A stretch of 64,000 nt of DNA from IMGVR_UViG_3300032268_000986:124001-188000; one strand, 5' to 3'. Shown: positions 131 to 58,685, counted from the stretch's first letter. The notes: a model not told the origin generated them from the letters alone. Program-made: numbers and translations.

Positions 131-1018
131 TTATTTTCCCCATCCATTGCCCCAGAGATCCACATGCAATCTTGGGCTGTAGTTGTAGCCACGCTCCAGG
201 GCCCAGTTAGCCACATTCACACGATTCTTCTCATAAGGCACAGCTACGCCGCCCTGGGGCATGACAAAAACTTTACCTTTGAATCCTGCCTCACGATACT
301 CAGACACAGCCTGATCAACTTCTTCAAAGTGTGCCGCACTGTCAACAACAAACTTGAGATACACTGTGCCAACCCACTCATAGTCCACGACAATCTTGGG
401 TCGGATGGCGTCTGCCCATGATTCGCCACTGGCACTCAACTTTGGACTCACACTGAATGTGAGTGCTGCCGGTGTTCTTTTTTGCGCCAAGGAGTTGTGT
501 TTGCTGTTCAAGGTCCAGTTCAACAAGTATTGTCTAAACGCAGGTTGTAGTTCCTGAGTGCCATTGGTTTCAAATGTTAAATTTTGCAAATTCAACATGT
601 CAGGATGTGACAGCAATTCTTCATACGCACGTTGCCAACCCAGCAACGGCTCACCACCCGTGATCACAAGATGTACATCGTTACCATTGCGTTGTAACCA
701 TGTATGATTGGGAGTAAGCGCCAACATGCGCTCTACTACTTCACCAGTATTATAATTGGGACTTAGATGTTTGTAAGCCGGATGCCATGATGCATAGCTG
801 TCACATCCGGTTTCTACCAGGGGTAGATCTTCAAACCGATTATACATGTGAACAACTTCGGCCACTTCATCTGCACCAGTGGATCGTTCTCCAGGTTTGC
901 ATCCAAACCCTGCACAGGTAAAGTTACATCCAAATGTTCTCAAAAACACACTGGGCACGCCAACAAATCGGCCTTCGCCCTGTGCAGAATAAAATAGTTC
1001 GCTGATTTTTAATTTCAT
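131..1018 (-). CDS. queE: 7-carboxy-7-deazaguanine synthase (radical SAM)
   Basis: ISELFYSAQGEG, FLRTFGCNFTC...GCDS, VITGGEPL, FETNGT, SVSPKL, YSPRLHVDLWG are QueE-family motifs; clustered with queD and folE. Confidence 0.93.
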   Translation of the reverse strand: MKLKISELFYSAQGEGRFVGVPSVFLRTFGCNFTCAGFGCKPGERSTGADEVAEVVHMYNRFEDLPLVETGCDSYASWHPAYKHLSPNYNTGEVVERMLALTPNHTWLQRNGNDVHLVITGGEPLLGWQRAYEELLSHPDMLNLQNLTFETNGTQELQPAFRQYLLNWTLNSKHNSLAQKRTPAALTFSVSPKLSASGESWADAIRPKIVVDYEWVGTVYLKFVVDSAAHFEEVDQAVSEYREAGFKGKVFVMPQGGVAVPYEKNRVNVANWALERGYNYSPRLHVDLWGNGWGK

Positions 1019-1043
1019 ACTGTATTGTACAATAAATTTAATG

Positions 1044-3011
1044 TCAAGTCAATGCCGCAGTTTGCCCACGACGTGCAAAAGTGTCAGTACTGCCCACACG
1101 CTCAATTGATGCTTTGCCAAAGTTACGTCGTCGAGCAAAATAAAACAGCTCTAGGAATCGCGGAAAACTCATGGTTTTTTCTTCGGGAAAGTCCAAGTGA
1201 TAGGTCACTGTTGCTTTTTCAAGTTTGGCATCAGTGGTGATGTATTCCCAAATGTTGTAGTCAAGTTTGAGCTGTTGCGGATAAGACGATATGGAATCAT
1301 ACGCCACTAGATATCTGCGTTGGAATCGCATGACATCGGCCAACAAGTCTTGTGGTAGATCGTAGCGTTGCATGAACTGTTCCAGTCTTTCAAATATGTT
1401 GTCATACTGATGATGCACATGCATGTTCAAGATTGAACGATGAATCAAGTTCCAGCCATGTATCTCAATGCCGCCAATGTCGGGGTGGCGTATTTGGCCT
1501 TGAGTCATCCAGTTTTTGTAATACTGTCTTACTTCTTGCATCTCTTGCACGAACCATGAGTCCTGTTGCAAGAACTCAAACAGATCATCATAGAACTTGC
1601 TGTAATCCACGCCCTGATACTTGTAGACCAGTCGGCTCAGCAGTGTGCTCACACCATTGATATGGAATGTGTTGATGTACCATGAAAACACTTCGGCATC
1701 CAGCATGATTTCGTCGGGCAGATCCTTGGTGGCAGTGATGATGTCAATGCCTTCTTCAATGTGTTCGTTTGAATAACTGCCTGAGAAGTAGTCAGTCACT
1801 CGTGCTGACTTGATCTGAAACAGTTTTTTCTGCAACAGATTCATTTCTGCGTTTTCCAGCAGTTGTGCTTGGAACACAGTGAGGCCAGTGTGATTGCCCA
1901 TGCGGAACAAGCGCCAGAAGTTGTCTTTCCATGTGGTAAGACTTTCGCCGGGCAATCCCAGAATCAGTTCGGTATAAGTGGGAATGTTGCGCTGTTCACA
2001 AAGTTCAAACACTTCTTCCAGCTTGTTCATTTCCATGTTTTTGCGTCGAATGTTTTCCAACACATCCACGTCAAGACTCTGCACCGACAAAGTAAGTCCT
2101 TGGTTGAACCCCGGGGCATCCAAGAGTTTCTTCACAATGTCTACTACTTCTTTTTTTTGATTCTTGGCCCAGGCCACTGAGAAAGTCTTGGGGTAACCGT
2201 ATTTTTCTTGAACTTCAATGATCTTGTCAGCAATCATATTGTCACGCTCGGGAAACATACCAAAGTTGGCATCTGTGATGGATATAAACCCACAACGATG
2301 CTTGGCCATCCATTCCAGTTCGTCAAACACTCGTTCCAGTCCAAAGTGCTTGACCTTGTTGTAGGTCAAGCTGCCCCAGTCGCAAAAGGTACAGGCAAAC
2401 GGACAACCACGATTGGTCTCCAGAGTGCCGTTCCATTCCACGTCGGGATTGTCAGCCATGATCTGATCAAATATTCCTGTTAGATACGGACTGGGCACTT
2501 CTCCCAGGGTTTCTATTCGTTTGGCGTCCGGCGTTTTTACTGCTTCTCCGCCGCGATTGATCAACAGGCCTGGAATATCTTCCCAGCGTTGATTTTCAAA
2601 GTTACGCAGTATTTCGCGAAATGTGATCTCGCCTTCAAAACAGATCACAAGATCCATGTAGGGCTCTTTGCGAAAAATATCAGGATCAGTCACAGCAGGT
2701 TCGGGCCCACCAAACACAATCAAACAATTGGGATTGAGTTCTTTGACCATGCGAGCCAGGGTGTAGTTGTACTGGTGATTCCACACATAGGTGCTGAATG
2801 CTACTACATGATTCTGCGCCAACTGTTGTGCCAAGGGCTCCACAGCATCTCGACGCCACACCATGTCAGTACATTCAAAGTTTTGTCCAATCCACTCATC
2901 GGCCCGGGCATAACTCCAGATCACTCCGGCAGAATAAGGCAAGTAATGGGCATTGAATTCTTTTGGCCCCTGTTGAAAGTTGGGTTGTACCCATGCAATT
3001 TTATATGTCAT
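1044..3011 (-). CDS. Cobalamin-dependent radical SAM protein
   Basis: N-terminal B12-binding-like domain (FSTYVWN, VFGGPEP), ETNRGCPFACTFCDWG CxxxCxxC motif, DANFG, ELILGLPGE. Confidence 0.88.
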   Translation of the reverse strand: MTYKIAWVQPNFQQGPKEFNAHYLPYSAGVIWSYARADEWIGQNFECTDMVWRRDAVEPLAQQLAQNHVVAFSTYVWNHQYNYTLARMVKELNPNCLIVFGGPEPAVTDPDIFRKEPYMDLVICFEGEITFREILRNFENQRWEDIPGLLINRGGEAVKTPDAKRIETLGEVPSPYLTGIFDQIMADNPDVEWNGTLETNRGCPFACTFCDWGSLTYNKVKHFGLERVFDELEWMAKHRCGFISITDANFGMFPERDNMIADKIIEVQEKYGYPKTFSVAWAKNQKKEVVDIVKKLLDAPGFNQGLTLSVQSLDVDVLENIRRKNMEMNKLEEVFELCEQRNIPTYTELILGLPGESLTTWKDNFWRLFRMGNHTGLTVFQAQLLENAEMNLLQKKLFQIKSARVTDYFSGSYSNEHIEEGIDIITATKDLPDEIMLDAEVFSWYINTFHINGVSTLLSRLVYKYQGVDYSKFYDDLFEFLQQDSWFVQEMQEVRQYYKNWMTQGQIRHPDIGGIEIHGWNLIHRSILNMHVHHQYDNIFERLEQFMQRYDLPQDLLADVMRFQRRYLVAYDSISSYPQQLKLDYNIWEYITTDAKLEKATVTYHLDFPEEKTMSFPRFLELFYFARRRNFGKASIERVGSTDTFARRGQTAALT

Positions 3012-3018
3012 TGGGTAT

Positions 3019-3852
3019 TTATTTTGATTTACTGTGTGGATATTTGAATTGCATCATCTGGCTGTTGATATCATTTTGTGCTAATTTCTCCCAGGGGTCC
3101 TGTGTGCCTTTGAATATATTTTGAAAGAATTCCACACTCATGCCAATGTTGTGCATGTGATTGGCCAACTTGATACAATCCTTGTGTCGCAATTCAATCA
3201 TACCGGCGCTATGGAAATCGTTGGGGTCATCAGGCTTGCCCTCTAACATGGGACGATTGCGGAACACATCATCGTTGTTGTTGCCTGTTAGATCATAACG
3301 ATCGTGCAACACATGTACGTCAATGCGCTGGTAAATGTCCAACATATAAGCCTGCTGGCTCACCCAGCCATCTTGTGTGGGATGTGGTGATATGTAGCCC
3401 AGTAACTCATACCACTTGCGCGGTACAATGGGAAAAATGCTATAGGGATGATCTCTGTGAGTGCGGAAAGACAAAAGTTTAAACTGATCAGTATAGCCGG
3501 CAATGACCTGATCCCAGTCCTGTGTTTCCATCACAGCATCATCATTCCACACTATCAACCAGTCAGCATCAGCATGTTTGGCCAAGGCATTGCTGTATTT
3601 GTGCAGGTTCACATAGCCCATGCGACGAAATTGCATGGCAATGAACTGAATGTGGTGTTGTTCCAACCAAGGTTTTAGGTGATCATGGAAATAAGTCAGG
3701 CCCACTTGATCATCATCATCAAACGCAAACAGCAGTTGAATTCGTTCTGGGCAGTCAGCAAGTTCAATCAAACTGCGAACACTGCGACCCAACATGTTGT
3801 CAGTACGTCCACGAGTAGCCAGCAGCACAGCAATGTCAAATCTAGATGTCAT
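3019..3852 (-). CDS. GT-A fold (family 2-like) glycosyltransferase
   Basis: IAVLLATRGR, FAFDDDD, WNDD acidic motif; start moved to MTSRFD behind GAGGAG RBS. Confidence 0.75.
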   Translation of the reverse strand: MTSRFDIAVLLATRGRTDNMLGRSVRSLIELADCPERIQLLFAFDDDDQVGLTYFHDHLKPWLEQHHIQFIAMQFRRMGYVNLHKYSNALAKHADADWLIVWNDDAVMETQDWDQVIAGYTDQFKLLSFRTHRDHPYSIFPIVPRKWYELLGYISPHPTQDGWVSQQAYMLDIYQRIDVHVLHDRYDLTGNNNDDVFRNRPMLEGKPDDPNDFHSAGMIELRHKDCIKLANHMHNIGMSVEFFQNIFKGTQDPWEKLAQNDINSQMMQFKYPHSKSK

Positions 3853-3853
3853 G

Positions 3854-4393
3854 TTACTCCTCGTAGGTTGCACTGTTTCCGGCATGTTCAAATACTTCAA
3901 CTGAACGCAGACGAACTTGTTCATTCATGAGATAACCAATGCTGTAGCCTTGTGATTGACCAGTGCGGTGGTTTGTGAATTCATAACGTTCGTCATCTTG
4001 AAATTTACGCAAGATACGAGCCATTTCTTCATATGCCAGTTTGGCAAATTTTTCACAACCCACACCATTGTCGAATATGCGTATATCACAAATGCCACCT
4101 CGATCTTGTATCCCAAGATCGGCCATGCTCTTGAACAGATCCACATGAGGATCATCACGTGCCACCAGTAGAGTATGATCAAACATGTTTTTAGCCCAGT
4201 CATGGAAGGACTTTAGCACGTCCGAATCTATGACCCAGTTGCAAACATCTAGAGACTCAGACTCAAACACCAAACGAAAGCCAATGGAATAACCATGAAG
4301 CAGACTACGGTGACTGTGGCGACTACGCCACTGTCTAAACACGCAGGAAAATCCTTGATCAGTGCCGTAGGTTTTTGTACTAGTATATTTCAT
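3854..4393 (-). CDS. Second, degenerate QueD-like protein (Cys replaced by Arg)
   Basis: Aligns with adjacent QueD (STKTYG, FRQW, LHGYS, NWV.D, FDH, EKFA, EHAGNSA.YE); HSHRSLLHG instead of HSHCHLLHG; start moved to MKYTSTK. Confidence 0.8.
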   Translation of the reverse strand: MKYTSTKTYGTDQGFSCVFRQWRSRHSHRSLLHGYSIGFRLVFESESLDVCNWVIDSDVLKSFHDWAKNMFDHTLLVARDDPHVDLFKSMADLGIQDRGGICDIRIFDNGVGCEKFAKLAYEEMARILRKFQDDERYEFTNHRTGQSQGYSIGYLMNEQVRLRSVEVFEHAGNSATYEE

Positions 4394-4868
4394 CCAACAA
4401 GTCCTCGTTCCAGTTGTTATGACCTTCGTAGATGGCGCTGTTGGCACCGTGTTCAGCGCACTCAACTCGTACACAATAACAACGATCGTTGGTCTTTTGT
4501 CGAATCAAGTCATCAGCAAAGTTAAAGGCATGTTCAGCAAACTTCTCTGCACCCACGCCATCAAAAATTCTAATCTCAGCTAGATCCAATGCTTCCAGTT
4601 CTTGGAATTTGGCCAAGTGTGGATCATTTTGATCCAAGGCTAGCTTGTGATCAAAGTGATCTTCCAGCCATGCTTTCAGCGGTTTGAGTCCGCCAAAGTC
4701 CACAGCCCAGTTCTTGTTGTCTAATTGATCACATCCAAATGTGAATGTAAACGCCAGACTGTAGCCATGTAGCAAATGACAGTGTGAATGATCTGCGTTG
4801 GGTTGACGGAACACCGCTGACAGACCAATGTTGTGTCCGTAATGTTTTGTTGAGTAATATTTTGCCAT
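4380..4868 (-). CDS. queD: 6-carboxy-5,6,7,8-tetrahydropterin synthase
   Basis: HSHCHLLHGYS (CxxxHG), VDFGGLK, DHFDHK, AEKFA motifs. Confidence 0.9.
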   Translation of the reverse strand: MAKYYSTKHYGHNIGLSAVFRQPNADHSHCHLLHGYSLAFTFTFGCDQLDNKNWAVDFGGLKPLKAWLEDHFDHKLALDQNDPHLAKFQELEALDLAEIRIFDGVGAEKFAEHAFNFADDLIRQKTNDRCYCVRVECAEHGANSAIYEGHNNWNEDLLDEIY

Positions 4869-4940
4869 TGTGATTCCCCTATGTTAGATTATAGCATAGG
4901 CAGCAGAGTTTGTATAGCGGGATGAAGCCAAAGACCGCTT
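4869..4940 (-). promoter_or_regulatory. Structured queD leader (preQ1-I-like stem-loop plus RBS-occluding hairpin) overlapping a possible sigma70 promoter
   Basis: AGCGG/CCGCU stem, A-rich tail, CCUAUG/CAUAGG hairpin over AGGGGA RBS; also TATACA-17-TATAAT with an extended -10 TG. Confidence 0.55.
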
Positions 4941-4948
4941 AAAAATAC

Positions 4949-5344
4949 TTATGCAGGCAGTTGATAGCCGTCTGCTTTGTAGTTGGCTTGCCCGGCAATA
5001 ACTCCACGCACACCGCCAATGGGATCAGCACAGTCACCCACACGGCGTGGTATCAAATGCACATGTGGGTACATCACAGTTTGCCCTGCTTCTCGACCCA
5101 TGTTGATGCCAATGTTAAATGCCGCACATTCACCTGTGGCTACCATTCTACGACCATGCCGCATGGCTGATTCAAAACATTCTATGATTACATCATCGGT
5201 ATTGTACTTGGGCACAAACAACAAGTGTCCATGCGTGACTGGAAACCGGTCCTGAAACACCGAGACATGATAGTCTGATAATTCACCTACCAACAGATCC
5301 CAGGGTGCAACACCATCTTTTTGTGCTTGTTCTAGGTCGGTCAT
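4949..5344 (-). CDS. HIT family nucleotide hydrolase
   Basis: FPVTHGHLLFVPK, GQTVMYPHVHLIPR (HxHxx variant of the histidine triad). Confidence 0.88.
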   Translation of the reverse strand: MTDLEQAQKDGVAPWDLLVGELSDYHVSVFQDRFPVTHGHLLFVPKYNTDDVIIECFESAMRHGRRMVATGECAAFNIGINMGREAGQTVMYPHVHLIPRRVGDCADPIGGVRGVIAGQANYKADGYQLPA

Positions 5345-5346
5345 GT

Positions 5347-6030
5347 TTAACCTCTGGTACAAGCATTGACAATGTTCATGAACTCAGTGCGCACTGATGG
5401 GTCACTGCGGAACACACCACCTAGTCGACTGGTCACAGTGCTGGATCCTGTGTCCTCAACACCACGACTTTTCACACAGTAGTGTTGAGCATTGATTACC
5501 ACGCCAATGTCATCAGTTTCCAAGATGTATTGCAAGGCATGATACACTTGTTCAGTCAGTCGTTCTTGAATTTGAGGACGCTTGGAGAAGTACTCTACGA
5601 TGCGATTGATCTTGCTGAGTCCCAGAACTTTTTGCTTGGGAATATAGCCCACAGTGGCCAAGCCGTCTATGACAACAAAGTGATGTTCACAGTTGCTTTG
5701 TACCGAAACGTTGCGTTCCACAACCATTTCATCATACTTCATTTTGTTGTCTACTGTGGTACACTTGGGAAACGCCTCGTAGTCCAGACCCCAGAAGATT
5801 TCGTTTACATACATCTTGGCCACACGCTTGGGTGTGTCACGCAGGCTGTCGTCATCTAGATCCAGACCCAGTACTTCCATGATGTGTTTGAAATCTTTTT
5901 CAATCAGTTCAATTTTATCTTTGCGATCAACTGAATGTTGAAATGTTGGAGTTTCCACACCACACTTGATCAAGTGCTGATGTACTAGTTGACCCAACTC
6001 GGGGTCGCATTTGGTTTTGTTATAGCTCAT
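5347..6030 (-). CDS. folE: GTP cyclohydrolase I
   Basis: TPKRVAKMY, SNCEHH, LGLSKINR, RPQIQERLT, HYCVKSRGV. Confidence 0.96.
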   Translation of the reverse strand: MSYNKTKCDPELGQLVHQHLIKCGVETPTFQHSVDRKDKIELIEKDFKHIMEVLGLDLDDDSLRDTPKRVAKMYVNEIFWGLDYEAFPKCTTVDNKMKYDEMVVERNVSVQSNCEHHFVVIDGLATVGYIPKQKVLGLSKINRIVEYFSKRPQIQERLTEQVYHALQYILETDDIGVVINAQHYCVKSRGVEDTGSSTVTSRLGGVFRSDPSVRTEFMNIVNACTRG

Positions 6031-6097
6031 TTTGATATCCTTCCTTACACGGATGTTAATTTTGAAGTTTGCTACCGTTGTGTAGCATGTTTATTTA
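6031..6097 (-). promoter_or_regulatory. TAAATA late-promoter motif and hairpin leader of folE
   Basis: TAAATA overlapping the upstream stop; UGCUAC/GUAGCA hairpin; AAGGAAGGA RBS. Confidence 0.5.
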
Positions 6098-6676
6098 GTC
6101 AGTGATTGTGATGGTTCTACAATCTGGATACATAACATGCTTGGGTGGCTCACTAACATATTTTGCCAGCAACTCACTGCCATGCTGGGCTTCTTCTATT
6201 GTGGGTTTGTAGTGATAGCCCACGCGGAAAACACGTTGGTCCTGCCAAGGGGCAATATTCAAATCCCTGCCATCATAACGCATGCGGATAATATCCTCAT
6301 AGGCCTGGTGGTCATCAAGTAGTATAGCACCACCGCGGCCTATTTGTAAAGGCTTAGTGTGTCCAAAACTCAAGCACTGCATGGCACCACCCTTGTACAT
6401 GTCCTGCTCTAGCCTGCGAGCACTATCCCAGATTCTAGTGCCCACAAACTCATATTCGCCTTGCCAGGACGTTGCCGTCAACTCATAATCAATGCCCAGT
6501 CGATGCATGATCATGGGCACACTCAAATAAGTGTAGCAGGTAAATGAACACTGCTTGACTTGATCATATCTCATGCACAGTTCAATTGCATGTGTGCAGC
6601 AATCGGTCATGATGGCATAGGGGGCGCCAGTGAACTTGGCCAGGCTTTTTTCAAATTTTAATATTTCGTCAAACAC
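6095..6676 (-). CDS. Compact DegT/DnrJ/EryC1/StrS-like PLP aminotransferase
   Basis: FEKSLAKFTGAPYA, THAIEL, WDSA, LSFGHTKPLQIGRGGAIL; GTG start overlapping the upstream stop inferred. Confidence 0.8.
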   Translation of the reverse strand: MFDEILKFEKSLAKFTGAPYAIMTDCCTHAIELCMRYDQVKQCSFTCYTYLSVPMIMHRLGIDYELTATSWQGEYEFVGTRIWDSARRLEQDMYKGGAMQCLSFGHTKPLQIGRGGAILLDDHQAYEDIIRMRYDGRDLNIAPWQDQRVFRVGYHYKPTIEEAQHGSELLAKYVSEPPKHVMYPDCRTITITD

Positions 6677-7667
6677 AATTTCTCTCCGGAAAAAAATCTT
6701 GTTTCTCTCCCTGTCGGGCAAGATCCAATGTAATGCAGTGTATGCCACCGTCCCAGAAATATCTATGTCTAAATGGGACAATGTGAGGGGTGATGCCATG
6801 ACGATCAAACGCCTCGAACACTTTTTCATTATAGTTATTGACAATCACATTGGTTGGATCGATGGTCAGCATGTTGACATCAAACACTGTTTCTTCAACA
6901 TAGCCCACCCAATGACTCAACCAGGTTTCCACGCAATCAATTACATCTTGGTCCTGTTCAAAGCCTGGAATCCACCAACGGCCTTGGTTCTTTTGTTTGA
7001 GAGTCATGAAACCTTGTACCTTGGCCCAGCTTTGGTCAGGCAAGTATACAACTTCCCAATCAGGGAATGTTTCTGTATAAGTGGGTATGTCATGCAGACT
7101 TACAATCAATCCCGGAGCCACTGGACAAAATGTACCATCAGTGTGACCAAAAGTTTCAATCACATGGGATCGATAACCAGGAAACTGTGCAGCCGCATAT
7201 TTTTTCATCTCTGCGTATGGCTCTGCTTGATAGCTACCAAAGTACAAGTCCTTGCCGATGCGACTGACCATGGCACCATTGGTCCATGAGTTTTGCATCA
7301 AGTGGGCGTTGTTGCCTTGTTGCTTGACAAGATTCAAAATTGGAGACCAGGTAGTTTGGTCATAGTAACTGTGATAAAACTCATTACCAATCATGATGGC
7401 ATTATCACGTGGCTGCATTGGTGGGCGAGTAATAGTTCCGTATTGGTTAAACGGTTCAGCCGGTAATTCGGGCCTAACCACTGTGACATCAAACTCTTGA
7501 AGTTTGTTGATTATGGCTTGGTAGTCTTCTTCGGTCTCTTGAGCTATTTTTTCAAACAACTCACGAACATGCGGAACCTTGATCCATGAATAAAACTCAG
7601 GTGGATAACTACGGCCCACTGCACACACCTGCAATGGATCCCAGGGTTGATGTACGCTGTAAGTCAT
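6669..7667 (-). CDS. Amidinotransferase family protein (glycine/inosamine-phosphate amidinotransferase-like)
   Basis: WDPLQVCAVG, QPRD, HTDG, DVNML, HRYFWDGGIHCITLD with C-terminal catalytic Cys. Confidence 0.85.
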   Translation of the reverse strand: MTYSVHQPWDPLQVCAVGRSYPPEFYSWIKVPHVRELFEKIAQETEEDYQAIINKLQEFDVTVVRPELPAEPFNQYGTITRPPMQPRDNAIMIGNEFYHSYYDQTTWSPILNLVKQQGNNAHLMQNSWTNGAMVSRIGKDLYFGSYQAEPYAEMKKYAAAQFPGYRSHVIETFGHTDGTFCPVAPGLIVSLHDIPTYTETFPDWEVVYLPDQSWAKVQGFMTLKQKNQGRWWIPGFEQDQDVIDCVETWLSHWVGYVEETVFDVNMLTIDPTNVIVNNYNEKVFEAFDRHGITPHIVPFRHRYFWDGGIHCITLDLARQGEKQDFFPERNCV

Positions 7668-8623
7668 CGCTGATACCAGGCCCATGCATGGCGAATCATG
7701 TCATCTAATTCAAACTGTCGCCAACTTCCGGCAACCTGGGAAAATTTGGCAGCACTGGCTGTGAGCACAGCCGGGTCTCCGGGCCTAGCATTACCTAGCA
7801 CAACTTTTAATTTTCGCCCGGTTACACGTTCAGCTGCGGCAATGATTTCTCTATTGCTAATACCGTTGTTGGAACCCAGATTGTAGACACCAGAAGGCAG
7901 TACTGGATTCAATGCCATGACATGTGCCTGGGCTATGTCTGCCACATGCACGTAGTCACGTACACATGTGCCATCCAGTGTGGGATAGTCTACACCATTT
8001 AATATAAATTCACGATCATCTCTCATGGCTTCCAACACTCTGGCAATGATGTGTGTAGCACCGGGCCTTTGCCCATGACGTTGTTGTGGATCAGCACTGC
8101 AAGCATTGAAATAACGGAATGCCACATACTCAAGCCCATAAGCACGATGATAACTTTTCAACATCATTTCAGTCATGTACTTGCTTTCGCCGTAAGGTGA
8201 GATTGGTTGAGCCACGTCAACTTCATGACAGGGATTCATCATGGGTTCACCATATACTGCGGCCGATGAACTAAAAATAAATCGAGTACGGGGCATGGCC
8301 TGACGAATAATGTCTAGTAAGATCTTGGTCTTGATCACATTGTTTTCGTAGTATGAAGATGGATCTGCAATGCTGGGACCTACCAAACTGGTACCACCAC
8401 AATGAATCACAGCAGAGGGCCGTGCCACAACAATATGTTTCAGTGCATCGTCGCTGGCAAAGTCAGCTAACAAAAATTCGTACCGGTCTGAAGGCTCTAT
8501 CTGTAGAGTTGATGGCATTTTTTGATTGTCAATACCCAGAACACTGTGACCAGCGTCGAGCAATGCCATTACAATTTGTCCGCCAATGTAGCCAGCGGCC
8601 CCTGTTACAATTATTTTATTCAT
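7664..8623 (-). CDS. galE: UDP-glucose 4-epimerase-like NAD-dependent epimerase
   Basis: VTGAAGYIG, FSSSAAVYG, SPYGESK (YxxxK), FRYFNA, RDYVHVAD. Confidence 0.9.
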   Translation of the reverse strand: MNKIIVTGAAGYIGGQIVMALLDAGHSVLGIDNQKMPSTLQIEPSDRYEFLLADFASDDALKHIVVARPSAVIHCGGTSLVGPSIADPSSYYENNVIKTKILLDIIRQAMPRTRFIFSSSAAVYGEPMMNPCHEVDVAQPISPYGESKYMTEMMLKSYHRAYGLEYVAFRYFNACSADPQQRHGQRPGATHIIARVLEAMRDDREFILNGVDYPTLDGTCVRDYVHVADIAQAHVMALNPVLPSGVYNLGSNNGISNREIIAAAERVTGRKLKVVLGNARPGDPAVLTASAAKFSQVAGSWRQFELDDMIRHAWAWYQR

Positions 8624-8624
8624 A

Positions 8625-9470
8625 TTATCCACAATGTTTAATACATTTTTGATTGGTCAAATCAGTGTCAACTTCTTGAATGTGTATTACATTTTGAAAT
8701 TTTTCACTTTTTTCTAAATAACAACATCTACTAATACTACCGTCAGCTGACACGTACACACTTGGAATAGACAAATGCATACAATTTTTAGCTTCAACAG
8801 TAGTTTTGACTCGATTAACTGTTGCTTGCATAAAAGTAGCCGGCAACAATTCAAACTCTTCGCCTGTTTGATAATGCCTGGCTTTTTTATTTGTACGATA
8901 GGTGTGCGCTAGACAAAACTTTTTAAAATTCATCTTTTGGCTCAACATTAGGCATTCAGGAATCTGGTGCTCGTTATGCCGGTAAGGGATAAACTGCCAA
9001 ATTGCATTTCCACCGTGATCAATAAATGCTTGTGCATTTTTTATGATCTTGTTAAAATCTGTGCCTTGCCTGTAGATTTCATGTACGCCAGCTAGTCCAT
9101 CAATACCAAACCAAACTTCATGATTCATGTCGGCAAGTTGTTGTGCAAACTCGGTCCACCAACTTTCGTTACGTAAACTACCATTGGTATGAAGTTGTAT
9201 TTTTTTACCGTATTTTTTTGAAATTGCAATCAAGTCAGTAATGTAGTCAGACGCAATGGGGTCACCGTAATTTCCACACAGTTGTACAGTATGAGAGTTT
9301 GGGAATTGTACAATAATCTCCTCATAGCGTTCCGGCATCAAATCCTGCTTGACAAGATTCGGATTGACACCAAATCCGTTTAGAGTTCGTGGACATGCTG
9401 GGCACCATGCATTGCATTTTGAGCTTGCTTCTACATGTATCCATCCAACGTCCTTGACAGATAGCGTCAC
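8625..9470 (-). CDS. Radical SAM protein with C-terminal SPASM/twitch-like Cys cluster
   Basis: SKCNAWCPACPR, GNYGDP, HTNGS, CCY; paralog of 24992..26035; GTG start overlapping the upstream TGA inferred. Confidence 0.85.
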   Translation of the reverse strand: MTLSVKDVGWIHVEASSKCNAWCPACPRTLNGFGVNPNLVKQDLMPERYEEIIVQFPNSHTVQLCGNYGDPIASDYITDLIAISKKYGKKIQLHTNGSLRNESWWTEFAQQLADMNHEVWFGIDGLAGVHEIYRQGTDFNKIIKNAQAFIDHGGNAIWQFIPYRHNEHQIPECLMLSQKMNFKKFCLAHTYRTNKKARHYQTGEEFELLPATFMQATVNRVKTTVEAKNCMHLSIPSVYVSADGSISRCCYLEKSEKFQNVIHIQEVDTDLTNQKCIKHCG

Positions 9471-41135: not shown

Positions 41136-43371
41136 CGCTGCCTACTGTTTGTGTGCTGGGGGAAATTACCACAAATTCAACTTGATCATCTACTAGATCA
41201 GCCACAACTTCGCAATCTCTAAGTTGATCAAACAAGATGCGTTTGCTGAGTGGCACACGCAACAACTCGTCAATCTTGCGGCTCAAGGGTCTGGCACCCA
41301 ACTTGCTGTCGTAGCCCTTTTTGGCCAACAAGTCCACGGCAGCTTCGCTCACAGTGAGTCGAATGTTGCGCTGGGCCAGGCTGGTTTTGAGATCGTCTAC
41401 AAATTTTACCACGACCTTTTTAATGGACAAATTGTCCAGCTTTTGGAACTTGACCACTGAGTCAATACGGTTTCGCATTTCGGGCTTGAAAAACTCTTTT
41501 ACTGCTCGATCATCTTCGCCGGTTTTCTCAAAGCTACCAAAGCCAATGTTGTTGGTTTCACTATCTCGGGCGCCCAGGTTTGATGTCATGATGATGATGC
41601 AGTTCTTGCAATTGGCTTTCTTGCCATTTGAACTGGTGATAACACCTTCGTCCAGCATCTGCAACATGATGTTGGTGACGTCGGGGTGAGCCTTTTCAAT
41701 CTCGTCAAACAGCACAATGGCAAAGGGATTTTTGCTGAGATCTGAAATCAGTTTGCCACCGCCTATGTTGCCATCTTCAAAACCCACGTAGCCTGGCGGC
41801 GCACCAATCAAGCCGCTGACCGAGTGACGTTCTTGAAATTCACTCATGTCGTATTTCAGCAAGGGCATGTCAAGATTTGCACTCAACAATCGAGCCAGTT
41901 CAGTCTTGCCTGTGCCAGTGGGTCCTGTGAACAAGAAACTGGCCATGGGACGCTTGTCATTGCCAATGCCAGCGAAGGAAATATACACACGTTCCAGCAC
42001 TGTGTCCACAGCTGAATCTTGCCCGTATAACTTTTGTTTGATATTGCTTTCAAGTTCCACAATTTTGGCTGATCGTTCGTTCTGCAGACGGTCTGTGGGC
42101 ACACCGGTCACACGACTCAGTTGAGCTTCAATCAAGGCACGAGTAATGGTCACACAGCCTTGATCCCGCACACGTTCACGAGCACAGGCACCGTCAATCA
42201 AGTCAATTGATTTGTCGGGATTCTTTTTGTCATGAATGTAACGATTTGCCAGTTCCACAGCAGTGGTCATGGCCTCGGTGTCAATCAACACATTGTGGAA
42301 TGTTTCCAGGCGTGGTGAGAGACCAATCAGGATCTGTTCTGTGGTCACTGCATCGGGTTCATCAATGCTGAGCTTGTGAAAGCGGCGCATCAAGGCACGA
42401 TCTTTTTCAAAGCTCTCGTAAAACTCTTCCCAGGTGGTTGATGCCACTACCTTGAGCATGCCCTTGGTGATGGCCGGTTTCAGCATGTTGGCAAAGTCCA
42501 AGCTGGAGTTTGATCCAGAACCGGCGCCACGCATGGTGTGAGCCTCGTCGATGAACAAAATGGTCTTTTTCTTGGTCTCCAAGGCTGCAATCACCTGTTT
42601 GAATTTTTCTTCAAACTCACCGCGGTACTTTGACCCAGCCAGCAAACTACCAATTTCCAGGCTCCACACTTCGTGATCTTTGAGAAACTCGGGCACACGT
42701 CCTGCATGAATTTCCTGGGCCAGTCCATCCACAATGGCAGTTTTGCCCACGCCGGGATCGCCCACCATGAGCACATTGGCTTTGAAGCGTCGAGCCAACA
42801 CCGTGATCATGTCTGACAGTTCGGTGCTGCGACCAATCATGGGTTCCAGTTGATTTTTTGCAGCACGAGCAGACAAATTCATGCAGTATTCTTCCAGCAC
42901 AGCATCGGCCTGTTGCTCAGACATCACTGCCGAAGATTCTTGACTGTAGTTTTTGCTCCAGAACTCAACAAATTCTGCTTTCTTCACTCCATACTTGAGC
43001 AAGAAATAGTGTGCATGACTGTTGGTTTCGGCCATGATAGACAGATACAAGTCAATCGTGGTCAATTGACGTCGTCCAGTAAACATCACTTGTACATTGG
43101 CGCGATTAAAAATGCGTTCCAGTGACTGTGTTTTTTTAGGTTGTGTGTCTGGAGTGTTGCTGATCATGCCCACTAGACTGCCAAGATATGCTGTTATGTC
43201 AGCATCCAGGTTGACCACGTCGGCACCAAAGCGTTCCAGAGTCTTACGGAATGGGTCAAATCGAATCATGCTCAACAACAGGTGTTCAGTCAGCACATAC
43301 TCGTGTTTTTGGTCACGAGCAATTTTCACGGCCTGTTCAACAACAAATTCAATATCGGGGCTATTTTGCAT
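41107..43371 (-). CDS. clpA: ClpA-type Hsp100 AAA+ chaperone
   Basis: Clp N-domain (EHLLL), Walker A GDPGVGKT and GPTGTGKT, FIDEAH, FDEIEKAH, no ClpB middle domain, IGF loop. Confidence 0.92.
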   Translation of the reverse strand: MQNSPDIEFVVEQAVKIARDQKHEYVLTEHLLLSMIRFDPFRKTLERFGADVVNLDADITAYLGSLVGMISNTPDTQPKKTQSLERIFNRANVQVMFTGRRQLTTIDLYLSIMAETNSHAHYFLLKYGVKKAEFVEFWSKNYSQESSAVMSEQQADAVLEEYCMNLSARAAKNQLEPMIGRSTELSDMITVLARRFKANVLMVGDPGVGKTAIVDGLAQEIHAGRVPEFLKDHEVWSLEIGSLLAGSKYRGEFEEKFKQVIAALETKKKTILFIDEAHTMRGAGSGSNSSLDFANMLKPAITKGMLKVVASTTWEEFYESFEKDRALMRRFHKLSIDEPDAVTTEQILIGLSPRLETFHNVLIDTEAMTTAVELANRYIHDKKNPDKSIDLIDGACARERVRDQGCVTITRALIEAQLSRVTGVPTDRLQNERSAKIVELESNIKQKLYGQDSAVDTVLERVYISFAGIGNDKRPMASFLFTGPTGTGKTELARLLSANLDMPLLKYDMSEFQERHSVSGLIGAPPGYVGFEDGNIGGGKLISDLSKNPFAIVLFDEIEKAHPDVTNIMLQMLDEGVITSSNGKKANCKNCIIIMTSNLGARDSETNNIGFGSFEKTGEDDRAVKEFFKPEMRNRIDSVVKFQKLDNLSIKKVVVKFVDDLKTSLAQRNIRLTVSEAAVDLLAKKGYDSKLGARPLSRKIDELLRVPLSKRILFDQLRDCEVVADLVDDQVEFVVISPSTQTVGSDGIIRLDNI

Positions 43372-50938: not shown

Positions 50939-51736
50939 TTATTTCAGGCCCAGGCTTTTTCGTATGTTTGTGGCACTGATATTGTGAATACGATCATCAA
51001 ATGTTTCCTGTTCTATTTTGTACCCAACATCCCTGCCGTAGGTGATGTTGACAATGTTGGGCACCACTTGGATTTCGTACTGTCCCTGATACACCATGTC
51101 TAGATCTCTGCGTATATAATTCTTTACTTGATCAATGGCAAATGGGTTTGATCCCTGCCAACCCTGACAGTCCCTGATTTGTATCACAACTTGTCCGGTT
51201 TTGGCAATGGCACGTTCAAACAGGGCACGATGTCCCTCATGCCAGGGCTGCCAACGTCCCAGCATTTGCACAGTTTCCTTCTGCCAGTCAAACACGGGTC
51301 TGCGGCGGTTGTCCAGTACATGTGCGGCAATGAATTCTCCCCATTTTTCTGCATGTTGTTCAGTGATACGGAAATCATATACTTCGGGTGCAACAAACGC
51401 TCGATTTGTGTCCTCGTAGCGGCCACGGTCAATGGTGTCAACCCATACAGTCCAGTCGGCCTTGAAGTTGTTGCGCATTTCCACCAAGGGTGCAACAAAA
51501 TCACAGATGACATAATCCGCATCTGTCATTGCATCTGCTAGACTACGCATACGCAGACTTTGACGAATACGACCTGCTTCGCTGAAGTCCCAGTCATTGT
51601 GCTCTTTGCGCACATCGTCGGCATTGAGCCAACGCACACGTTTCTTTTCGGCCTGCAAGTGCTCAAGAATGTGCTGTGCTAGATATGTTTTGCCTGCACC
51701 GGGCAGGCCCATGATTAGTATTCGTTGTGGGGTCAT
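50939..51736 (-). CDS. APS kinase-like domain fused to a small HxGH nucleotidyltransferase domain
   Basis: GLPGAGKT, LNADDVR, DFS..GR..Q, DFVAP; GRWQPWHEGH. Confidence 0.8.
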   Translation of the reverse strand: MTPQRILIMGLPGAGKTYLAQHILEHLQAEKKRVRWLNADDVRKEHNDWDFSEAGRIRQSLRMRSLADAMTDADYVICDFVAPLVEMRNNFKADWTVWVDTIDRGRYEDTNRAFVAPEVYDFRITEQHAEKWGEFIAAHVLDNRRRPVFDWQKETVQMLGRWQPWHEGHRALFERAIAKTGQVVIQIRDCQGWQGSNPFAIDQVKNYIRRDLDMVYQGQYEIQVVPNIVNITYGRDVGYKIEQETFDDRIHNISATNIRKSLGLK

Positions 51737-51752
51737 TTACGTTTCCTTTGGG

Positions 51753-51977
51753 TTAATCTTTATCTGTGACTATGACAGCAGTTTGGTCAACCCAAACTAT
51801 TCTGCCCTCACAGGCAATGTTCCATTTGGTTACACCGTGCTCGTGTGTGCATTCAGTGTAGGTTTCTCCAATGATGCGAACATCTGTGGCCAAGTGTTCC
51901 ACACCATTTTCAAATATGCGCCACACCAAGTCACTGCCGTGGTGTTGTGTATTGAATCTAACGTGATACTTGTTCAT
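51753..51977 (-). CDS. Small hypothetical protein
   Basis: 74-aa ORF in the operon. Confidence 0.65.
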   Translation of the reverse strand: MNKYHVRFNTQHHGSDLVWRIFENGVEHLATDVRIIGETYTECTHEHGVTKWNIACEGRIVWVDQTAVIVTDKD

Positions 51978-52624
51978 CTGGGCAAGTGAGCCAAAAAATC
52001 ATTTGTTTTTTCAGTTCTGACTCCGGTAAGCTGTAGTGTGACTCGGGCATGGTGTCCTGCGTTGGCTGTTGAATGTGGAATGTTGGCCCAGTCAAACGTG
52101 GTCACAGATCCGGCCCGCCACTGATTCCAGTGATGGTTGCCGTATTCCCAGAACTGTCCCGGTTGCCAGGCCGTGAGCTGAACAAATATTCGCATCACAC
52201 GGGCAGGATCTTCGGGTAGCCATTTCTGCAGTTTGTCAATGTGCAGGTTCCACACTTCGCCGAGCCGTTGCACGTGAATGCGAGCCATGCAGTCTGCCAG
52301 TCCAAATTGATCCACAATCTGTTTCAATGAATCGGGAATTTGCCAATTCATGTGAGTAATGATCATTTGGGGATCAGCGCCCACCCGAGAGATATCATAT
52401 TCTTCGGCTGCCAGGTCCTCGGACGGAACATGCACACCCTTGCCTTTGTAGCCACGTGTGGCCCAGGTAGCAGGTTGTGAATTGGCAATTATCAAGTCCA
52501 AATCTGCCAGCCACGTGGGTTCAATGTGTCCCAGTTGAATCAGTACATCTTCGGCACGGTCCTCACGAGTGGGGTCAAAATGATAGTTTGATTTTTGTTT
52601 TGTGGTGTCCCAACTGCTGTTCAT
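51974..52624 (-). CDS. Cupin/2OG oxygenase-like protein
   Basis: NLHIDK (HxD), HSTAN.G..ARVTLQLTG. Confidence 0.55.
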   Translation of the reverse strand: MNSSWDTTKQKSNYHFDPTREDRAEDVLIQLGHIEPTWLADLDLIIANSQPATWATRGYKGKGVHVPSEDLAAEEYDISRVGADPQMIITHMNWQIPDSLKQIVDQFGLADCMARIHVQRLGEVWNLHIDKLQKWLPEDPARVMRIFVQLTAWQPGQFWEYGNHHWNQWRAGSVTTFDWANIPHSTANAGHHARVTLQLTGVRTEKTNDFLAHLPR

Positions 52625-53250
52625 ATCACTGTTACCTTGATGTCGTTGTTTGTGTAGTTTTGTCTATAATTGCTGTCGGGCCAGGCAATGTTCAATGCAT
52701 CACATAATTCCAAATTGGTAGATACTGGTTTTGATCCGCGATGTTTGTAATCCCACATGGCATCAGTGATGCCTGTGTTCTGTTGTTTAATTATGCCGGA
52801 CATGGTCTTTAAATCTTTATAGTATGTATCATACAATGGATAGGTGATGTCAAAATGTCCACACTTGACCCACCAGCCCAGACAAGCATCATCTGAGCGA
52901 TGTACCAACACAATAGGCGACTCAGGCCAGAGACTCTTTAGTGTGCCAATCTGTGTGGAAAAACAGTGACTTTTGATAATGCGAATACCCGAACCACAAA
53001 ATGGTCTATCAAATTCAGCCTCCAGCATTTCTTTTTTATATTGTGCTAGATTGTCAAATCCTGTGCCAAACTCCATGCCTGGATCCCAGTAAGCACCCAG
53101 ATGCATCAGGTCCATTCGGCCCGCAGCGTCATGGTAGTAGGTACGTGCATCAGAGTAGTCGGTTTGATCAATGCTGGGCGAATAATAAATGTTTTTTACC
53201 ACACTGCTCCATTTTGAGCCTGGGGCACCGGCCACAAAGATGTATTTCAT
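52621..53250 (-). CDS. Hypothetical protein, sulfotransferase-like
   Basis: IFVAGAPGSKWS, IIKSH, IVLVHR pattern of P-loop sulfotransferase folds. Confidence 0.45.
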   Translation of the reverse strand: MKYIFVAGAPGSKWSSVVKNIYYSPSIDQTDYSDARTYYHDAAGRMDLMHLGAYWDPGMEFGTGFDNLAQYKKEMLEAEFDRPFCGSGIRIIKSHCFSTQIGTLKSLWPESPIVLVHRSDDACLGWWVKCGHFDITYPLYDTYYKDLKTMSGIIKQQNTGITDAMWDYKHRGSKPVSTNLELCDALNIAWPDSNYRQNYTNNDIKVTVI

Positions 53251-54209
53251 TGGTTGGGATCAATTCTACGTGCAATGGGTTGCCAGGTCTGTTGCAGGCG
53301 AGCCATGCTGGCTCTAACACCAGCTGGACTGTGTTCTTCGGGTGTGATATACATCATGTTTTCACGAAATTTAGCACCGGCTTCTGCTGACCGTATTGCC
53401 GGCACAAACTGGTCACGATACCATGCTTGTATTTCAGCAGGTGTACCTGGTGGCAACACCATGTTCCAGCAGCCGTGTATGCTGAGTCCAGGGGCGGCTC
53501 GGCTCATTAAAGGAATGTGCTCAAGTCCTGGTAGAGTGCGTGTGTCAGCAATGCCGATAAACTTGAGAAGCCCGGCCTGCGCATGTGGATAGCCCACGGC
53601 CACTGGAGTCACACCAAATTCCACATGTCCGCCCATGACATCTGTCAAGGCCTGTGCCGGTCCTTTGTACATCACAGTTTGCAAGTTGTCGCTGCCAGGC
53701 GCACTGACTCGGTCCACAAGATATTCCACTGCCAGCTTGTGTCCGCCGCCACCAATGGCCACCATTAGTCGCTGTCGATTACGAATGGCAGCCACAAACT
53801 CTTCTGGAGTGTTGATTCGACTGCTGGGGTGTGCCCAGAATGCCAAGGGGCTGCGGGCAATGTTGGCAATGGGTTCTAGATCCATGGGATTATATTTTAT
53901 CATTTTTGGATACCATATCTCAGGTGTGACCCAGTTTGATTGGCAAGCAGGCACAGCAATGGTGTGCCCATCTCGAGGCTGTGTGACAAAGTGATTGATG
54001 GCAATGTTGCCATCAGCACCGGGACGATGTTCTGGCTTGAACACTGCACCAGTTTTCTTCTCCACAATGTCGGCCACGATGCGGAACGAGATTTCGTTGC
54101 CGGCGCCGGGTCCATTGGGGAATATCACAGTCACAGGTTTTGAGGGCTGCCATGCAAATGCTATGGCAGGCGCCAACAACAGCGCAGCAAATAATTTTTT
54201 GATCAACAT
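53247..54209 (-). CDS. TctC/Bug-family tripartite tricarboxylate transporter substrate-binding protein
   Basis: Signal peptide (AIAFA-W), PGAG.E, RPGADGNIA, DGHT, YKGPAQALTDVMGGHV, PPGTP. Confidence 0.9.
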   Translation of the reverse strand: MLIKKLFAALLLAPAIAFAWQPSKPVTVIFPNGPGAGNEISFRIVADIVEKKTGAVFKPEHRPGADGNIAINHFVTQPRDGHTIAVPACQSNWVTPEIWYPKMIKYNPMDLEPIANIARSPLAFWAHPSSRINTPEEFVAAIRNRQRLMVAIGGGGHKLAVEYLVDRVSAPGSDNLQTVMYKGPAQALTDVMGGHVEFGVTPVAVGYPHAQAGLLKFIGIADTRTLPGLEHIPLMSRAAPGLSIHGCWNMVLPPGTPAEIQAWYRDQFVPAIRSAEAGAKFRENMMYITPEEHSPAGVRASMARLQQTWQPIARRIDPNQ

Positions 54210-54218
54210 GTTTTTCCT

Positions 54219-54291
54219 TAAATAATAGTGTTGATTTCAACAAGAGCCACAAATTTTTTGTGGTACTGTTTAAAATTCTACTCTATTTATA
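54219..54291. promoter_or_regulatory. Face-to-face late-promoter motifs
   Basis: TAAATA on + (54219-54224) and TATAAATA on - (54291-54284), with a CCACAAA/TTTGTGG inverted repeat between them. Confidence 0.5.
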
Positions 54292-54300
54292 AAATTTTCT

Positions 54301-55020
54301 ATGAACACCAAAATTTTTAACCTTTTGCAAAAAAATTTGCACACAGCATTTGCTCTGCCCAAGTATGCCAACATTGTGATTGATGCCAACACTCGGGTGC
54401 AAGACCTGCCCTGGACTCCGGCTCGATACCGCAAGTTCAAGGATGCAGTGGATGCTGAATTGAGCCTGCCCTGTGACTACATGGGCACCTTGCGTGAGAT
54501 CACGCATGACCTAAGTGAGCGATATATTCATCGCTTCTTTGCTGAAATATGGAAACCTCGAACCAATGACTATGATTACACTGGCTGGCAACTGGCTGAA
54601 GAAATTAACCAACTCAATCCGCGATCGGTACTGGACGTGGGTTGTGGATACCATCCGTTCAAAGGGAGAATTAATAATCTCACTGGGATCGATCCTTACA
54701 ACAACTGTGCTGATTATATGGTTGACATCTTGGAATACGTGGGATCACATGACGTTGTCATCGCGTTGGGTTCAATAAACTTCAATGATCGCGAAGAAAT
54801 TGAAGCACGATTTGCTCGCTGCGTGAGTGTGCTGGATGTGGGCGGCCGGTTCTATCTACGTGCCAATCCTGGTATCACACATCGCACAGGACCTTATGTG
54901 GAAATATTCCCCTGGACGTTTGAAGTGGTCAAAGAATTTGAATCACGATACAACCTGCGCTTGGACACCTTCAAAAAGGATGCCAACGACCGACTGTACT
55001 TTGTTTATACTCGACTGTGA
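54301..55020 (+). CDS. Class I SAM-dependent methyltransferase
   Basis: VLDVGCG, TGIDPY, VLDVGGRF. Confidence 0.8.
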   Translation: MNTKIFNLLQKNLHTAFALPKYANIVIDANTRVQDLPWTPARYRKFKDAVDAELSLPCDYMGTLREITHDLSERYIHRFFAEIWKPRTNDYDYTGWQLAEEINQLNPRSVLDVGCGYHPFKGRINNLTGIDPYNNCADYMVDILEYVGSHDVVIALGSINFNDREEIEARFARCVSVLDVGGRFYLRANPGITHRTGPYVEIFPWTFEVVKEFESRYNLRLDTFKKDANDRLYFVYTRL

Positions 55021-55653
55021 TCAGCGCCCGGCCACTGCCAAGGCAGCACCGTTGTTGAAACTCTGACTGTGCGACTGCGCCTGACGCAGACCCTTGCGCT
55101 TTGACCACTCATATCCAGCACGATGGCCCGAGCAGTCCTTGGTACAGGGCGAGCCTAGGAACGACAGCTCTTGCAAGTGTTCGGCTGACTCGCCCAGTTC
55201 AATTTCCGGGGTCACGCTCTGAAACGTGCGATCCATCACAGCAGTCTTGAACTGAAACTCTGAGGTTTGTTCGTTGTTGCGGCGTAGGCCAATGCTGAGT
55301 CCAGTATCGGGATCACGCACCCAGACCTTGCTGGCAGCTGGCATGCGCATGAGCTGATCCTGGATGCTGGGCAGTCGGCGCAGAGCTTGATCCACAATGC
55401 CAGGATCTATTTCACGAAAATACACCTGTTCAATGGCATGGCTGTCTACGTCAATGGTCAAGTCGCCAATGTGTAAGTGTCCTTGTGATGTTTCTGCTAT
55501 GTGTGATTTTGATTCACCGCCTCCATCACCGCCACCTTCGCCAGAATCTTCACTGCCGTAGTAGGCATACCCTGGGAAAAAATATCCACCATAACGACTG
55601 GATTTTTTCCCACGACGTTTTTTGCGCTCGGTGACAAACTCTTGGGCTCTCAT
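55021..55653 (-). CDS. Modular putative internal head protein
   Basis: MRAQEFVTE start; basic/Gly-rich segment; IAE and LQE sites; C-terminal PCTKDCSGHRAGY. Confidence 0.75.
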   Translation of the reverse strand: MRAQEFVTERKKRRGKKSSRYGGYFFPGYAYYGSEDSGEGGGDGGGESKSHIAETSQGHLHIGDLTIDVDSHAIEQVYFREIDPGIVDQALRRLPSIQDQLMRMPAASKVWVRDPDTGLSIGLRRNNEQTSEFQFKTAVMDRTFQSVTPEIELGESAEHLQELSFLGSPCTKDCSGHRAGYEWSKRKGLRQAQSHSQSFNNGAALAVAGR

Positions 55654-58649: not shown

Positions 58650-58685
58650 GTGGTTATTTATGGGTATATTATCAGTAGCCAAATC

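Follow-up and report, generated by a model that had tools for sequence, protein, structure and literature searches.

The preQ1-I riboswitches (RF00522) are H-type pseudoknots of about 35-45 nt with a 5-6 bp P1 closed by a conserved G-C floor pair, a P2 formed between the hairpin loop and the 3' tail, an A-rich L3, a conserved U or UU directly after the P1 5' strand (UU in types I and III), and a strictly conserved specificity cytosine immediately 5' of the P1 3' strand, preceded by U in type I (Carnobacterium antarcticum type) and by A in types II and III; type I also has a conserved C in the tail (PMC11625349, PMC10622847). In translational members, the 3-4 bp P2 includes the Shine-Dalgarno (SD) sequence, so that the ligand hides the ribosome-binding site (RBS; OFF switch). 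Other H-type pseudoknot riboswitches (SAM-II/SAM-V, guanidine-III, SAM/SAH, fluoride) are also small aptamers with the ligand pocket at or near the helix junction and translational control through RBS accessibility. In translational ON riboswitches such as the Vibrio vulnificus add adenine riboswitch, a cellular three-way junction, a strand of an aptamer helix pairs with the RBS region in the absence of ligand and is captured upon binding, which frees the RBS. THF-I and THF-II (folE motif) riboswitches, which are hairpin or junction folds acting as OFF switches, sense a pterin-type heterocycle with a guanine-like face and are associated with the folE/pterin branch starting from GTP. Finally, the T4 gene 32 mRNA leader pseudoknot, also of H-type, governs translation of the downstream gene by binding the gene's own protein, without strand swap with the RBS.

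The element studied here lies upstream of a QueD-like gene, in a window of 64,000 nucleotides (bases 124001-188000) of a 342,865-bp IMG/VR phage record judged 99% complete. It was originally predicted to be a preQ1-I-like aptamer with a shifted ligand, in which loop UGGC could pair with tail GCUG or GCC and a downstream hairpin occludes the RBS. The described sequence was found to the base on the minus strand (4939-4866), so the observation itself is confirmed, whereas its interpretation is only partly supported. The organization of the locus, as refined by the comparative analyses below, was the following (window coordinates):

4949-6030, minus strand: upstream genes outside the switch, GTP cyclohydrolase I FolE (5347-6030) and a HIT-family protein (4949-5362)
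4939-4935, minus strand: P1 5' strand, AGCGG
4934-4930, minus strand: L1, UCUUU, consensus N-C-U-(U)
4929-4923, minus strand: P2 5' strand, GGCUUCA
4922-4921, minus strand: L2, UC
4920-4916, minus strand: P1 3' strand, CCGCU
4915-4906, minus strand: L3, AUACAAACUC, consensus WUAYAAA-YUC, overlapping the -35-like TATACA (4916-4911)
4905-4899, minus strand: P2 3' strand, UGCUGCC, the proposed switching strand
4900-4878, minus strand: predicted RBS-sequestor hairpin, CCUAUG (4900-4895), an 11-nt loop and CAUAGG (4883-4878), sharing CC (4900-4899) with P2
4896-4888, minus strand: extended -10 promoter-like element TGCTATAAT, predicted transcription start at about 4881
4879-4875, minus strand: SD, GGGGA (AGGAG in most relatives), partly inside the 3' arm of the sequestor
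4868-4380, minus strand: QueD-like T-fold gene (PTPS family; start codon 4868-4866), separated from the HIT-family gene by an 80-nt gap
4474-131, minus strand: rest of the presumed operon, a second T-fold paralogue (3854-4474), a GT2-like protein (3019-3924; probable start at M25), a KedN5-family B12-binding radical-SAM C-methyltransferase (1044-3011), and a QueE-like radical-SAM protein (131-1018)

A conserved pseudoknot in phage leaders

Taken alone, the sequence of the window was not distinguishable from chance, with an MFE of -14.3 kcal/mol compared to -15.6 ± 2.8 in shuffles (z = +0.46) and 126 of 200 shuffles folding at least as well. Its own P2 is weak, with 5 Watson-Crick pairs of 7 and U*U and U*C mismatches. 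The QueD-like protein had more than 593 relatives in IMG/VR, of which 80 loci were retrieved, and their leaders showed compensatory changes. P1 varied between AGCGG/CCGCU, ACCGG/CCGGU, AGAGG/CCUCU, AGUGG/CCACU, UGCGG/CCGCA and AUCGG/CCGAU, and the loop paired with the tail in many versions, including GGCG/CGCC, GGUG/CACC, GGCAU/AUGCC and AUGACAU/AUGUCAU. Covariation among phage queD leaders, which had been set beforehand as a condition for the prediction to stand, was thus observed.

On a MAFFT alignment of 55 distinct sequences, 96.0% of cells were paired compared to 79.2 ± 1.1 in shuffles (0/500), the covariation score was 0.383 compared to 0.083, and 7 of 9 pairs showed double changes, while sliding the partners by 1-3 columns reduced pairing to 28-52%. 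All 5 pairs of P1 were paired in 55/55 sequences, 4 of them with compensatory changes, and RNAalifold recovered P1 independently. As MAFFT realignment could not bring the outer P2 pairs into register (the gap fell inside the P2 5' strand), these were counted on 137 distinct aptamers anchored at the invariant junction pairs. In this set, the three outer P1 pairs covaried (AU/UA, GC/CG/UA and CG/AU/UA), followed by two invariant G-C pairs. P2 positions 3-7 were paired at 0.79 compared to 0.52 ± 0.023 in 2000 permutations, register shifts collapsed the pairing, and one position carried all four Watson-Crick types (UA 40, GC 25, AU 20, CG 19). Overall, four to six P2 pairs covaried. G-U pairs were frequent on this strand only, which fixes the strand. 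These statistics are inflated to some degree by the relatedness of the sequences.

P2 is 7-10 bp long across the motif and starts with invariant A-U and C-G pairs, although the A-U pair at the junction changes to G-C in 3 relatives, and a U*C mismatch is conserved in 135/137. Of the two pairings originally proposed for the loop, the GCC option is right and the GCUG option is wrong. The conserved UCUGC is split, as UC ends L3 and UGC begins the P2 3' strand; an alternative pairing of UCUGC with the P1 5' strand was rejected because UCUGC stays constant while P1 changes. Invariant unpaired nucleotides cluster at the P1/P2 junction. The first L1 position was U 54, C 50, A 32 and never G (0/136), positions 2-3 were CU in 136/136, and L2 was UC in 122/136 and always ended in C. 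The A-rich part of L3 was always 7 nt, with A at positions 3, 5 and 7 in 136/136, followed by YUC.

The motif shares with type I preQ1-I the fold, the 5-bp P1 with its G-C floor pair, the UC before the P1 3' strand with its invariant cytosine, the A-rich L3, and a conserved C near the end of the tail (PMC11625349). The genes behind it are QueD-like and QueE-like, although TGT and a convincing QueC are absent from six near-complete genomes carrying the motif. However, it is not a detectable member of this family. No Rfam model matched the window at gathering score, and none relevant matched at E<=10 the leader (4780-5030) or the leader of one relative (L019), where only noise-level snoRNA matches on the opposite strand were found. 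RF00522 run on the whole genome gave six noise matches of at most 11.7 bits, none at the leader, against a gathering score of 39. Accordingly, no SAM-II/SAM-V, guanidine-III, SAM/SAH, fluoride or THF model matched; the consensus sequences and gene associations of the pseudoknot classes are unrelated, and, in contrast to the folE motif, folE itself lies here upstream of the element and outside its control. The motif also differs from preQ1-I by its N-C-U L1 instead of U-U, the three extra conserved nucleotides of L3, the longer P2 with its U*C mismatch, and a P2 3' strand that does not contain the SD, which lies 20-45 nt downstream. It is therefore described here as working like a preQ1-I-type pseudoknot aptamer, but not as a member of the family. 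No description of this motif was found in the literature.

A true but highly diverged preQ1-I riboswitch, binding preQ1 or preQ0 made by the host and reporting the host's queuosine-precursor pool to the phage, could account for the shared features and for the QueD-like nature of the regulated gene. It appears unlikely in view of the covariance-model results, the differences listed above, the predicted ON logic (see below), and the absence of TGT, QueF-type context and a convincing QueC in these phages.

Expression platform and proposed switching

The platform downstream of P2 differed completely between lineages, but the P2 3' strand and the few nucleotides after it were complementary to the RBS. 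In class a, which includes the window, CC+UAUG pairs with CAUAGG(AG), the SD, and UGCUG with UGGCA of the start codon and codon 2. In class b, G(C/U)CAUUG pairs with CAAUGGC; in class c, UGUC(A/G)UC with GAUGGCA; and in others, GUCUU with GAGAC. When the platform alone was folded, 123 of 129 distinct leaders paired at least 2 of the 4 distal P2-3' nucleotides with the SD/AUG window (mean = 3.43 compared to 1.91 in shuffles), through at least four unrelated designs. In the window, the sequestor hairpin is the MFE structure of the platform alone (-6.8 kcal/mol), and the downstream hairpin does occlude the RBS, as originally predicted. Relatives kept this stem with compensatory variants, CCUAUA/UAUAGG (relatives L151 and L319) and CUCUAUU/AAUAGAG (relative L193). 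The sequestor was favored over the bare P2 duplex by about 3.5 kcal/mol. The pseudoknot and the RBS sequestor are therefore mutually exclusive, which predicts an ON switch, opposite to the usual preQ1-I logic. This direction is inferred from nearest-neighbor energies that ignore pseudoknot and tertiary terms, and an ON switch on a biosynthetic operon is less common than an OFF switch.

The caveat of the original prediction, a TATACA-17-TATAAT promoter starting downstream of the aptamer, is correct and stronger than initially stated. The promoter scan gave a 10/12 match with an upstream TG, and the TGCTATAAT...CATAG signature (4896-4879) is shared with a family of at least 15 near-identical sigma-70-type promoters of this genome, GGTTGACCAATAA...TG(C/T)TATAAT-ATAnnCATAG, placed 17-31 nt before start codons. 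TGNTANAAT was enriched two-fold genome-wide and three-fold in non-coding DNA. A transcript starting near 4881 would lack the aptamer and the 5' arm of the sequestor. A strong promoter-like element was also found inside the platform in 64 of 134 relatives. That the conserved bases would only be a promoter and its surroundings, with a fortuitous RNA structure, is nevertheless contradicted as a full explanation: 70 of 134 relatives keep the aptamer without any internal -10 element, 28 have instead a TTGAC(C)-N16-17-TATAAT promoter whose -10 ends 7 nt (the mode) before the first P1 nucleotide, which places the aptamer at the very 5' end of the mRNA, hairpin variants without a -10 element keep the stem through compensatory changes, and promoter function cannot explain compensatory changes and strand-specific G-U pairs in P1 and P2. 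It survives only as a co-existing feature of the platform in the window. No terminator was detected between the HIT-family gene and the aptamer. In a lake metatranscriptome, a 173-nt contig 100% identical to the window spanned 4837-5009, from the HIT 3' end across the whole gap into the queD 5' end, and contigs from relatives covered their own aptamers. This is supportive but not decisive, as these are low-depth assemblies without strand information that could derive from DNA carried over into the library.

Taken together, the 4939-4899 segment would encode a roughly 41-nt pseudoknot aptamer of a class that is not in Rfam and has so far been seen only in uncultivated aquatic, mostly jumbo, phages. 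[quoted passage not shown] In this view, without ligand the P2 3' strand sequesters the RBS, and a small molecule binding at the junction would lock the pseudoknot, with the A-rich L3 lying along P1, remove the anti-RBS strand and turn on translation of the QueD-like gene, and probably of the second T-fold, GT2-like, B12 radical-SAM and QueE-like genes behind it. The ligand, on weaker grounds, would have a guanine-like Watson-Crick face read by the invariant L2 cytosine, pointing to a 7-deazapurine or pterin of the FolE > QueD > QueE pathway; with ON logic, a precursor such as the FolE product or a guanine compound is a more natural candidate than an end product. The ligands originally proposed (7-deazaguanine, CDG and guanine) remain conjectural, although a ligand other than phage-made preQ1 is reasonable given that the phage lacks QueC and TGT. 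A read-through mRNA from folE/HIT carrying the switch and a short unregulated mRNA starting near 4881 are expected. We assign this explanation a probability of about 0.55. Confidence in a functional cis-regulatory RNA structure is high, small-molecule binding is slightly more likely than not, and the ON direction has about even odds.

A ligand-independent element, in which the pseudoknot simply keeps the RBS open on transcripts carrying the 5' end, distinguishing long from short transcripts or acting as an RNA thermometer or folding device, is also conceivable, as nothing shows that a ligand chooses between the two structures and a P2 of 7-10 bp could form on its own co-transcriptionally. It seems improbable, since a mere structural toggle does not need invariant unpaired junction nucleotides, including a never-G position opposite the invariant C, and the fixed 7+3 nt L3 and conserved U*C mismatch suggest a pocket.

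A more tentative possibility, less likely than not, is that this is the first riboswitch class specific to phages, a preQ1-I-like pseudoknot re-tuned to a different guanine-face ligand (a 7-deazapurine or pterin intermediate such as CDG, or the FolE product dihydroneopterin triphosphate), working as an ON switch that lets giant aquatic phages start their own deazapurine pathway, with no QueC and no transglycosylase, only when the precursor is available. Phage-specific riboswitches are almost unknown, those seen in phages so far being copies of bacterial classes, and this motif, with hundreds of representatives, textbook covariation and one copy per roughly 350-kb genome, would show that giant phages carry their own metabolite-sensing RNAs. 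Its small size makes it a tractable case of how the minimal preQ1-I fold could be altered to bind another ligand with the opposite regulatory output, and it could serve as a compact ON-switch part.

Distribution and gene context

A motif pattern scan returned at least 120 hits in viral contigs, with P1 present in 107 of 120, and 52 true instances among 120 hits in metagenomes, including marine and estuarine contigs. In cellular genomes, only two short MAG contigs, from Bacteroidetes and Chitinophagales bins, carried the motif, and they are probably binned phage DNA. A second covariance-model hit in the window (42946-42987, plus strand, 17.8 bits) lies antisense inside a 772-aa ORF, lacks the GG/CC pairs and matches only ACAAAUUCUGC, and was rejected as chance. 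Six near-complete genomes of 343-382 kb, i.e. that of the window and five others (96-100% complete, 353-382 kb), carried exactly one copy each.

The regulated gene product matched Pfam PF01242 (E = 3.5e-14) and was about 50% identical to the QueD-like proteins of cultured phages with 7-deazaguanine gene clusters (Iggy, BcepGomr, the RHEph phages and cyanophage BUCT-ZZ01), none of which has the RNA motif. Blastn with the leader gave only 18-19-nt chance matches in cultured phages, and covariance model R1 found nothing near the QueD-like genes of Synechococcus phage BUCT-ZZ01, Pseudanabaena phage Pan1 or Achromobacter phage Motura. PDB sequence searches with the T-fold and GT2-like proteins returned nothing. 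QueC, TGT/DpdA and phosphoribosyltransferase genes were absent from the genome of the window. The six near-complete genomes have FolE and T-fold genes, but none has TGT or a convincing QueC, as only partial N-terminal matches were found in the five others, one of them just over the Pfam cut-off. The motif may thus mark an uncharacterized pathway, comprising FolE, two T-fold proteins, a GT2-like protein, a B12 radical-SAM methyltransferase and a QueE-like protein, whose product may be a new 7-deazapurine or pterin derivative, to which the ligand of the aptamer would be a direct clue.

Among 171 ORFs directly following the motif, 163 were T-fold/QueD-like. Such an almost exclusive link to one protein family would be expected for a protein-binding pseudoknot, i.e. 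translational autoregulation by the T-fold protein or another phage factor in the manner of T4 gene 32, for which the conserved loop nucleotides could equally be a recognition surface, all the more as no ligand is known. This alternative is considered unlikely because the motif also directly precedes non-T-fold genes and because the regulated T-fold proteins belong to distinct subfamilies while the junction nucleotides are invariant; the compact junction-centered conservation and strand-swap platform are, by inference, typical of small-molecule riboswitches. The exceptions were a cupin, a methyltransferase-like protein, a canonical PTPS and an unknown 235-243 aa family, most of them with a T-fold gene as the next ORF, and two contigs carried two aptamers in one operon. 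Recurrent downstream partners in relatives were the GT2-like protein, the QueE-like radical-SAM protein and the B12 radical-SAM methyltransferase, and in some phages a phosphoribosyltransferase, KdsA, methyltransferases and glycosyltransferases also occurred.

Promoter-like sequences in the phage genome

A family of at least 15 nearly identical sigma-70-type promoters was detected across the whole phage genome, with the form GGTTGACCAATAA-N-CCAATT-TG(C/T)TATAAT-ATAnnCATAG, followed by AAGGAGCC and the start codon 17-31 nt downstream. Examples were found on the minus strand of the genome contig at positions 321532, 252021, 251565, 225353, 214830, 84006, 83224 and 80873, while the corresponding element in the window was located at 4896-4879. 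The CATAG conserved after the -10 element may represent start-site context or a regulator site.

In addition, a weak covariance-model match for the RNA motif (17.8 bits) was obtained at 42946-42987 (plus strand) of the window, antisense inside a 772-aa ORF. Only the ACAAAUUCUGC stretch matched, and the match was judged to be a chance hit.

Gene content around the motif and radical-SAM complement

The gene set located at 131-6030 of the window (minus strand) comprised FolE, a HIT-family protein, two T-fold paralogues, a GT2-like protein, a B12 radical-SAM C-methyltransferase, and a QueE-like protein with an unusual CNFTCAGFGC cluster region. The second T-fold paralogue possessed an Arg in place of the catalytic-motif Cys (HSHRSLLHGY compared to HSHCHLLHGY). 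QueC, TGT/DpdA and PRTase were absent. This gene content suggests an undescribed 7-deazapurine or pterin product. Other ORFs and start sites in this part of the window were as follows:

3850-3924: 5' part of the GT2-like ORF, which probably starts at Met25 (ATG at about 3852) and not at 3924
About 4393: internal ATG (MKYTSTK...) at which the second T-fold gene probably starts, rather than at the GTG at 4474
6095-6844 (minus strand): ORF with only partial DegT/DnrJ/EryC1 aminotransferase matches
6669-7685 (minus strand): ORF overlapping the previous one, without any Pfam hit
7664-8632: NAD-dependent epimerase/dehydratase

Concerning the GT2-like ORF, the ESM Atlas holds the protein from residue 25, and this start abuts the stop of the preceding T-fold gene. 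The two overlapping ORFs (6095-7685) could correspond to a frameshifted or split aminotransferase next to the epimerase/dehydratase gene.

At the scale of the whole genome, the phage encoded 14 radical-SAM-domain matches (e.g. 125929-126417, 282935-283339, 56792-57259 and 51233-59377 on the genome contig), 9 of them above the Pfam cut-off and five forming a cluster at 51-59 kb, which is an unusually large radical-SAM complement for a virus.

Occurrence of the motif and of related gene sets elsewhere

Among 185,579 species-representative genomes, the only hits for the motif were two short contigs in MAGs binned as Bacteroidetes and Chitinophagales (CAIJZG010000025.1, 5785-5834; CAZXGO010000106.1, 110-162), which are probably mis-binned phage DNA. 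At best they provide a weak hint about the host, and the strong use of the AGGAG Shine-Dalgarno sequence argues against a Bacteroidota host.

The cultured freshwater cyanophage Synechococcus phage BUCT-ZZ01 (ON615601.1, 66502-74957) possessed genes for QueE, a xanthine-guanine phosphoribosyltransferase, a hypothetical protein, QueD and FolE, with no QueC or TGT in the 8.5-kb stretch examined. It had no RNA motif, because the genes abut. Some motif-bearing metagenomic loci had the same QueD/PRTase/QueE combination, which may point to a pre-replicative 7-deazapurine nucleotide route.

Finally, two contigs among the motif-bearing loci carried two copies of the putative aptamer in one operon (L003, 2139-2182 and 2929-2971; L007, 2134-2176 and about 2929), the first copy preceding an unknown 235-236 aa protein without any Pfam hit and the second preceding the T-fold gene.
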